Assembly (NCBI GenBank): GCA_024704765.1
Contig: JAKMXF010000066.1
Coordinates: forward strand, 927,883 to 991,882
DNA length: 64,000 bases
Source: Oopsacas minuta
Taxonomy: Eukaryota > Animalia > Porifera
Direction: 5' to 3'
The notes under the pieces: model-generated
Database searches by the model: none
Told to the model about the DNA's origin: nothing
What the model saw: only the letters and a program-made list of their open reading frames with translations
Part shown: positions 5,873 through 8,800 of the stretch, piece after piece
Numbering within the stretch: the stretch's first letter is position 1
How the letters are laid out: each line of letters starts with the position of its first letter
Position numbers and translations under genes: made by a program

Positions 5873-8800
5873 ATGAGTAGAATACTACTCTTACTTCTGT
5901 TTATCCATATTCTTATAAGTCTCCTCCTGGTTAATGGACAGATAATATTCGATAATGAACCATACAGAACTGACCTGAATGAAGAAACTCCAATAAACAC
6001 AGTTGTGCTGACAGTATCCGCTATCGACCTGAGTATTACATCTACTACTGGGATGTACTCTATAACATCAGATGAGTTCATCATTGATTCTCTTGAAGGT
6101 TCTGTTAGAACTAATTCGATTATCGATAGAGAGGAATCTGGTACTCCTTTACTGTTCGCATTTGATGTTACTTATGTATCTGATATTGGTAAGCTTATCA
6201 TAGATCAATTGTACTATTGATTATTTCAATGTTCTATTGCTATCAGGCTTATCTTAATTCTTATTTTCTATTTAGGTAATGTTGGCACATCTACCATTAC
6301 AATATCGATAAAAGATATTAACGATAATACTCCCTCCTTCACTAACTCCACTTTCTACATAACTATACCTGAATATACTCCAGTAGATACTATTATCCAC
6401 ATAGCTGTAGCAACAGATGCTGATACTGTGTCAATACAAGAGTCTGTGGATGGAAATGGCATCTCTGTGTTTAATTATACGATTGATTTTGGTAGAGTTC
6501 TGTACTATATTGTAGGAGGAAATGGAAGTAACTATTTTAATATTGATGTGGATTCGGGTGAAATCAAGGTTAGTTTACTAACTCAATTCTTAGAATAATT
6601 TACAGTTTATTGTTTGTATATTTTCTGCTTAGCAACTAAACTTCATAAACAATAGATATTATTATCAGGAATAGTACACCTAACTCCATGATTAGTAGAA
6701 CAGAAGGTCATTAATATATGAGTGATGCAGAACACTGATAAGATGTATTAGTTTCGAATTAGCTATGTATTATTGCATCAACCTTAGTTAGTTATTATAT
6801 TGAACTATTTCATTATTTAGACTATGGTTGGCGATATCGATTTTGATTCTATTCCCTCTCTAACACTTAATATCAGTGCACAAGACGGACCTGGCTTAAC
6901 TGCATACGCCTTATTAGTAATCACTATAGAAGATATCAATGATAATACTCCCATTATTATATATCCTAACTCTTTCTCTATTACACTGAGTGAGGCTGTT
7001 AGTGTAGATCTTATATTGGTAGAGAATATTACTAGTATGGATCTGGATCATGGATTGAATGCTGACGTCACGTAAGTTATATTATCCGTGCTATGTAATG
7101 ATTTTTGTCTATAATATATTACCTTAATTTAATTTAGGTACTCTGTATCAATATCAAATCAATCAGACAGCTTCTCTATAGATCCCACTTCCGGTAGAGT
7201 GGTACTAATATCACCTCTGGACAGAGATTTAGACTCTGTAGTATCATTAACAATACTAGCTACTGATGGAGGTACACTAGCTCTCAGTAGCTCGATTATT
7301 ATTACTATAATATTAACTGATGTAAATGATAACACTCCTACATTCTCTAATGATGTGTTTATGTTTGATTTGATGGAGGATATTGTGAATGGCAGTACTG
7401 TATATGAATTTATTGCTGTTGATAACGATGAAGGTTTGAATGGCACAGTTAGGCAAGTTGTTATACGAAATATAGTATCATAATATGTATTCAAATATGC
7501 CATTTATATTTTCAACAGGAGTATACATACATTTACGATCTATTCAATTTTATAAATTAGCTATAATGTGTTTCTACGTGAAAACCCTTACTGGTCAATC
7601 TATACCAATCAACCTAGACCCAAATGTTACTATAGAAGATGTGAAAGAGTCTATAGAAGAGAGTACAGGTATTCCTGTACTCTCACAGCGTCTGTTATTT
7701 GCCAGTCACGAGCTAGATGATGAATTAACTGTACAAGAGTGTGGGATTGTTTCCGATACTACTGTACACCTGAATCTAGAGCTCAGCGGAGGTGCGAAAA
7801 AGCGCAAAAAGAAGCAATATTCTACACCTAAGAAGAACAAACATAAGAAAAAGAAGGAGAAGTTATTAGCTCTGAAATTCTATAAAGTTGATGATAACGG
7901 TAAAGTTACTCGTCTTCGTAGAGAATGTAATCGTGAGGAGTGTGGAGCTGGTGTATTCATGGCAGCACATTTCGATAGGCAGTACTGCGGGAAATGCGGA
8001 CTTACTTATGTCTTCACAAAGGAAACTTAGTTGAATTTATAGCTTTATAGCTTAGGATTATTAGATTTGACTTTATTAGTTATTCGTTGATTACTATGGT
8101 ATTTCATTAATTGTAGAATTTGTATCCGGTACAGGAGTAGTTCTGATTACGTTATAATTCTGAATAGAAATTTATTTATTCGATTTATTTCGCAGGTATT
8201 CTCTTTCTCATTCACATTTCCACCTATCTCCAGATACTGGTGTACTCTCATTGATACAAACACTAGACAGAGAGACTACTGGAGAATATACCTTTGCTAT
8301 AATTGCATTTGATTTCGGTACTCCAATACCTACCACTGGTAGTGCTATTGTAAATGTAACAGTACTAGATGTTAATGATAATTTTCCTATCTTTAATTCC
8401 AGTTATTTTGAGTTACATATATTGGATACAGAAATTCCTATACTACTCATATCTACCGTTACAGCTCAAGGTATAATATTTGTATTAATATTTGTTTATA
8501 CTATTCGTATTTGCATTAATTATAATTGCTAGATAATGATATCGGGACAAATGGTGATATAACATATTCCTTCACACCAGACAGCACAAATCCATTTGCT
8601 ATAGACTCTATTACAGGAGATATAACGCTTACAAATAGTGTATCATACTCCCTGAGTAATGAATGGCATAACTATACTGTTAATGCTATGGACAGTGCTG
8701 CAGCTAGTGAACAGAGAACTGGCTTTACACAGTTATCTATCCGGGTAGGTTATTATATTTAATAATAATCCTATGGCTAGATGAGATCCTGAGTAACACT

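Follow-up and report, generated by a model that had tools for sequence, protein, structure and literature searches.

In the canonical fusions RPS27A/UBA80 and Ubi3, ubiquitin (~76/76) is joined to the ribosomal protein eS31 (S27a). In yeast, Ubi3 ubiquitin helps its partner in cis, giving more eS31 and less aggregation, and SUMO can in part stand in for ubiquitin in Ub-eL40 (Ubi1), the parallel precursor; a fully functional 40S subunit needs the ubiquitin moiety to be removed (reviewed in PMC8122580). The FUBI-eS30 fusion of holozoans (FAU) is comparable. FUBI is 36% identical to ubiquitin, keeps the Gly-Gly end and only the lysine equivalent to K27, and has been proposed to be a cis chaperone for the basic eS30 from which it must be cleaved; the promiscuous protease USP36 does this, and cuts ubiquitin fusions equally well (PMC8354635).

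The ubiquitin part of the eS31 fusion is not canonical everywhere. A divergent S27a-linked ubiquitin was described in Caenorhabditis (Jones & Candido 1993, by citation in PMC10457151) and then in 12 further species, nine of them protists from six phyla (Catic & Ploegh 2005, by citation in the same paper). In all mammalian Plasmodium the ubiquitin part of UbS27a is divergent, with 24/76 identical residues in P. falciparum, and S27a differs by less than 10% (PMC10457151). Divergent UbS27a is restated in PMC6332867 and PMC4197634, and all three papers attribute it to failed recombination or escape from homogenisation.

Here we describe a eS31 precursor of glass sponges (Hexactinellida) that falls in the divergent UbS27a class: its ubiquitin-like domain (UBL) is 45% identical to ubiquitin with the length kept, and its eS31 part is 93-100% identical among sponges. 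Like Caenorhabditis ubl-1 and the Plasmodium protein, it has a 76-residue ubiquitin-derived domain on a conserved S27a/eS31; unlike them, it belongs to a sponge lineage, whose sequences form a clade of their own in trees with mite and metagenomic fusions.

The gene and its ubiquitin-like domain

The window, a 64-kb stretch of the Oopsacas minuta genome within which all positions are counted, carries an uninterrupted, intronless open reading frame of 154 codons plus stop (7566-8030, + strand). Pfam recognises a ubiquitin domain (PF00240, residues 4-73, E 3.6e-20) and Ribosomal_S27 (PF01599, residues 103-147, E 4.6e-25) in its product. The features of the locus are as follows.

7453..8195, + strand: predicted GC-AG host intron of a large cadherin gene, 743 bp, with the entire UBL-eS31 gene inside it in the same orientation (frame and motif continuity)
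7555..7565, + strand: conserved AATTAGCTATA, candidate 3' splice or trans-splice acceptor (sole conserved upstream block)
7566..7793, + strand: ubiquitin-like domain, 76 codons, acidic and lysine-poor (PF00240; 34/76 ungapped identity; fold model; pN/pS)
7788..7793, + strand: Gly75-Gly76 codons, with the predicted cleavage site before Ala77 (invariant in the alignment)
7794..8027, + strand: eS31 (S27a) (PF01599; identity among sponges; dN/dS)
Residues 77-104, + strand: N-terminal basic extension of eS31 (15 Lys/Arg, one acidic residue)
7926-7997, + strand: eS31 zinc ribbon with Cys121, Cys126, Cys141 and Cys144 (all four invariant in the alignment)
8028..8030, + strand: stop codon TAG (reading of the open reading frame)

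The cadherin frame and motif continue across GTTAG/GCAAGT ... TTTCGCAG/GTATTC, and it is this continuity that predicts the GC donor (GCAAGT) and AG acceptor of the host intron. The opposite strand carries only short open reading frames at the locus. A 181-codon frame beginning at 7485 was rejected as the gene, given that its N-terminal extension is not conserved in orthologues and that the DNA upstream of the ATG at 7566 cannot be aligned except for a short motif just before it. When eight orthologous upstream regions were compared (window 7555-7565 and loci L001, L002, L003, L010, L011, L013 and L015), they were unalignable apart from this block, which contains (A/G)ATTAG and ends 5-6 nt before the ATG. 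The block resembles a 3' splice or trans-splice acceptor and is a candidate for such a site. A spliced leader of ~37 nt has been reported in the glass sponge Aphrocallistes (PMC10282587).

An ungapped alignment of the UBL with canonical ubiquitin gives 34/76 identical residues (44.7%), the value that had been proposed for this DNA in an earlier note, and a comparison with solved structures puts ubiquitin itself first (E 1.2e-15, residues 2-76 on 2-76). The canonical fusions that we recovered have 72-76/76. Substitutions in the UBL include K11Q, K29S, K33S, K48H, K63S, R54L, R72E, R74S, V70N and I44L, and K6, K27, R42, L8, I36, H68, L71, L73, G75 and G76 are retained. The earlier note had listed the loss of the same five lysines (with K48H and K63S), R72E, R74S, V70N and a preserved GG, and every one of these residues was read correctly. 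Of the features that define canonical ubiquitin, namely seven lysines, the R42/R72/R74 set and the L8-I44-V70 patch, the sponge domain therefore keeps two lysines (K6 and K27, 5/7 being gone), R42 and L8. No other ubiquitin was found within the 64-kb window.

R72 is the main determinant of E1 selectivity, as established by work on ubiquitin and NEDD8 specificity. From R72E we may reasonably infer that the UBL would fail to be charged by E1, and from the loss of lysines that it would fail to form chains.

The description of the fusion partner as an acidic ubiquitin-like protein agrees with the Pfam domains and with a net charge of -10 (pI 4.1), compared to 0 (pI 6.6) for ubiquitin. This acidity comes mainly from the loss of Lys and Arg, 8 of ubiquitin's 11 being gone, and not from a gain of acidic residues: ubiquitin has 11 of the latter, and in the sponge UBLs ten columns are always Asp or Glu and two more are mostly so. 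As the charge shift is mostly Lys/Arg loss, it does not establish that acidity as such was selected for.

An AlphaFold2 model based on a 28-sequence alignment places UBL residues 1-70 at a pLDDT of ~91, with strands and helices in the order of ubiquitin. The eS31 half is modelled with low confidence, which is expected because this protein folds on rRNA.

In architecture the sponge precursor is like the canonical RPS27A/UBA80 and Ubi3 proteins. It has the GG-AKKRKKK junction, which is invariant, and an eS31 that is ~82-84% identical to theirs. What sets it apart is the UBL, which lacks K11, K29, K33, K48, K63, R54, R72, R74 and V70.

Glass-sponge orthologues and selection

Besides the gene in the window, we found ten distinct orthologues, which fall into three clusters at 90% and come from no fewer than seven other ENA/Logan assemblies of glass-sponge type, sponge-associated metagenomes being among the sources. 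A word search with the UBL returned only two of the 90% clusters, and the third came from the search with eS31. All of the sponge proteins start with MCFYV and have a UBL ending in LSGG, and all of the genes are intronless. Most of the loci examined place the gene between cadherin exons, and several have an ADF-H/Rab gene upstream, like the window. At L002 the cadherin exons called lie downstream only, and at L010, the most divergent locus, where the neighbourhood is only partly alike, they lie upstream only and are weak. A single contig of 7.5 kb (ERZ26869290 ctg310550, loci L005 and L006) bears two inverted copies of the gene with its cadherin flank, one at each end, which is probably an artefact of fold-back assembly.

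Identity between sponge sequences ranges from 68 to 99% in the UBL and from 93 to 100% in eS31. Nei-Gojobori dS exceeds 1 in most species pairs, so that silent sites are mostly saturated and the sponge lineages must be old. By the same method, dN/dS is 0.04-0.24 for the UBL and 0.006-0.04 for eS31. In four unsaturated pairs the UBL has a pN/pS of 0.10-0.29 (Fisher p 3e-4 to 1e-7). A decaying retrocopy or pseudogene is thus excluded by the conservation of orthologues, partial synteny and purifying selection, and the view that this is a working gene, not a silent retro-pseudogene, is borne out by the ten further orthologues.

Across the sponges 41/76 UBL positions are invariant, and 16 of these are derived relative to ubiquitin (C2, F3, Y4, D25, E31, E32, T34, L44, H48, E49, E53, E57, C58, G59, S63 and S74). 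That so many positions are derived and yet invariant points to new constraint, beyond mere decay.

In several unsaturated pairs, silent divergence is lower in UBL codons 1-76 than in eS31 codons 77-150 (e.g., 0.31 vs 0.81). With ~50 silent sites, the difference may be noise, or Lys-codon composition may be behind it.

Diverged fusions in other lineages

The rarity that the earlier note implied for such a gene does not hold, given that divergent UbS27a was already known in Caenorhabditis and 12 other species and that many more cases were found here. About 45 of the 120 best eS31 matches carry a UBL that is only 26-42/76 identical to ubiquitin. They include proteins of the mites Tetranychus urticae (P0017), Panonychus citri (P0040) and Dermatophagoides farinae (P0109), and a large metagenomic family of ~30 JGI proteins with a 73-residue UBL (e.g., P0066, P0074 and P0087). 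We found no paper describing the mite cases in the literature searched, and no mention there of sponges or Hexactinellida in the context of divergent UbS27a.

The mite and metagenomic proteins are like the sponge precursor in that their UBLs are 26-41/76 identical to ubiquitin and have a net charge of -3 to -15, with R72 and R74 lost and L73 and the Gly-Gly kept. They differ from it in forming separate clades in both halves and, in several cases, in having small deletions, whereas the sponge UBL has exactly the length of ubiquitin. Divergence in P0017, P0040, P0109, P0103, P0083 and JGI metagenome proteins is at least as great as in the sponge UBL, and these UBLs are likewise acidic and without R72/R74. 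Several mite and metagenome UBLs have 73-75 residues and end in LVPTLPGG.

Trees of each half recover a single sponge clade (support 99/94 for eS31 and 100/99 for the UBL). It lies apart from the mite and metagenomic clades, and each diverged group branches off the canonical ubiquitin node on its own. Because cnidarians, molluscs, echinoderms, hemichordates, chelicerates, crustaceans, fishes and yeasts have canonical fusions, the sponge state is derived. The suggestion that the sponge domain diverged independently is upheld by the sponge clade in both halves and by the canonical fusion kept in cnidarians, molluscs, echinoderms, chelicerates and yeasts. Nematode, Plasmodium and other protist sequences lie outside the alignment and trees, and independence from nematodes and Plasmodium rests on taxonomy and on the canonical copies of cnidarians and bilaterians. 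We also considered a burst of change followed by stasis. This was rejected, since the ratio of UBL to eS31 branch length is several-fold on the stem and roughly similar inside the clade.

Two proteins from unknown hosts are intermediate in their identity to ubiquitin, P0036 (L018, run DRR256869) with 49/76 and P0097 (sample ERZ25070167) with 56/76. The GH-LEDELT stretch of the sponge UBL also occurs in P0036, whose grouping with the sponges is weak (87/72).

A probable ribosomal role and its alternatives

When 28 canonical and independently diverged fusions are aligned, the only invariant UBL positions are M1, L50, L73, G75 and G76, with L43, G47 and T66 near-invariant. Every truly diverged UBL is acidic (net -3 to -15) and lacks R72 and R74, and the greater part of the Lys and Arg residues has gone in these lineages. 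L73, G75 and G76 correspond to P4, P2 and P1, which we take, from substrate profiling, to be the positions on which deubiquitinases depend most.

These comparisons, together with the selection results, make it probable in our view that the sponge gene encodes a diverged-ubiquitin eS31 precursor whose UBL is a cleavable cis chaperone and not a source of ubiquitin. In this scenario, the precursor of glass-sponge eS31 carries a ubiquitin-fold domain at its N-terminus, as that of other eukaryotes does. In an ancestor of the sampled glass sponges, this copy of ubiquitin would no longer have been held identical to the other ubiquitin genes, as in the published model, in which gene conversion with the polyubiquitin locus no longer reaches the copy. 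The sponge copy has since diverged to ~45% identity and lost most of its Lys and Arg residues, including K48, K63, R72 and R74, so that it would no longer supply ordinary ubiquitin. Selection would still hold the beta-grasp fold, the negative surface and the Leu73-x-Gly-Gly tail, and because these are what is retained, the likeliest job would be a ribosomal one, as a cis-acting helper in the basic eS31's folding and solubility. A deubiquitinase would cut after Gly76 before or during 40S assembly. Cleavage, the chaperone role and the status of this gene as the single eS31 gene are the parts of the scenario that we infer.

FUBI-eS30 offers a close parallel, with a lysine-poor UBL, a Gly-Gly end and a small, very basic 40S partner. 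K27, whose equivalent is the one lysine left in FUBI, is present in all sponge UBLs. The partner differs, being eS30 in FUBI-eS30 and eS31 (PF01599) in the sponges, which sets the sponge gene outside FAU, and the sponge UBL is a recent derivative of ubiquitin, 45% identical to it as against 36% for FUBI. The earlier note had suggested that the diverged domain needs a different protease. There is no need to assume a special one, given that L73-x-G75-G76 is invariant in every diverged lineage and that USP36 also cuts ubiquitin fusions (PMC8354635).

The 16 derived invariant positions may mean that the UBL does more than a generic solubility job and binds a specific partner. It seems to us unlikely that the acidic domain, once released, has taken on a separate function in glass sponges, as a lineage-specific conjugatable modifier or as a dedicated escort with a specific partner; if it had, these positions would reflect that function, and the domain would be made 1:1 with each new 40S subunit. 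In one form of this idea, the free 76-residue protein would be a new glass-sponge modifier, attached through its Gly-Gly by a non-canonical or dedicated activating enzyme. The retained Gly-Gly end and the clear purifying selection on the UBL are consistent with such a modifier, the invariant derived positions would suggest a specific partner surface, and conjugation of FUBI has been suggested in mammals (PMC8354635). However, the need for cleavage alone explains L73-x-GG, the same three residues being the only tail residues kept in the other diverged lineages. Residue 72 is Glu in O. minuta and Gly in one orthologue, and no E1 or E2 gene lies near the gene at the loci examined. We therefore regard the modifier as an improbable reading.

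It is similarly doubtful that the gene is an extra eS31 paralogue, specialised or redundant and derived from an old intronless copy, with a canonical Ub-eS31 elsewhere supplying most of the eS31 and the ubiquitin. Such a copy might lack introns and lie within another gene's intron, as this gene does, but glass-sponge genes are mostly single-exon (table in PMC10282587), so the intronless state says little. Five sequencing runs contain the stretch and none is recorded as RNA. In four of them the contigs have a flat, DNA-like depth of ~60-100 across introns and exons, and the fifth, which belongs to a related organism (~95% identity), covers the flanks but, of the gene, the eS31 part alone. DNA-like runs are what a paralogue would allow, but an eS31 dN/dS of ~0.01-0.03 is unlike that of a redundant copy, and from this extreme constraint we argue that the gene in the window is the working copy. 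Furthermore, when 5.8 billion protein clusters were searched for eS31, the top three matches were each of this diverged type. None of the near-canonical or less-diverged fusions that we traced comes from a sample with sponge orthologues: P0013 was recovered from a Tara Oceans marine metagenome, P0012 from an unrelated run, and P0097 from a different sample.

A collection of 15 billion proteins lacks this exact protein of 154 residues, though it contains orthologues of other assemblies. Probably the public Oopsacas annotation misses the gene, the likely cause being that genes nested in introns were not predicted. That annotation lists only 83 nested genes, compared to 2432 in Aphrocallistes (PMC10282587), which fits with the gene being unannotated.

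The least credible reading is that the UBL is left uncleaved on the mature 40S subunit, as Ubi3 naturally is, by report, on Giardia ribosomes (PMC8122580): R72E and R74S could make the domain harder for deubiquitinases to recognise, but L73, G75, G76 and the GG-AKKRKKK junction have stayed strictly unchanged despite saturated silent sites, uncleaved Ubi3 causes translation-initiation defects in yeast (PMC8122580), and uncleaved FUBI-eS30 impairs 40S maturation in human cells (PMC8354635).

If the cleavable cis chaperone is the correct reading, glass sponges must draw their ubiquitin from other genes, and we assume that canonical polyubiquitin and Ub-eL40 genes are present in the O. minuta genome. 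The comparison with mites and metagenomes delimits the minimum for the ribosomal job to the fold, L73-x-G-G and the loss of basic residues, and this minimum supports the cis-chaperone view of ubiquitin-ribosomal fusions. The phenomenon itself has been known since 1993 and 2005, and glass sponges are a new lineage for it. The result leaves existing understanding unchanged, and it adds an early-branching class of animals to the lineages in which S27a-linked ubiquitin has turned into a UBL that is no longer ubiquitin.
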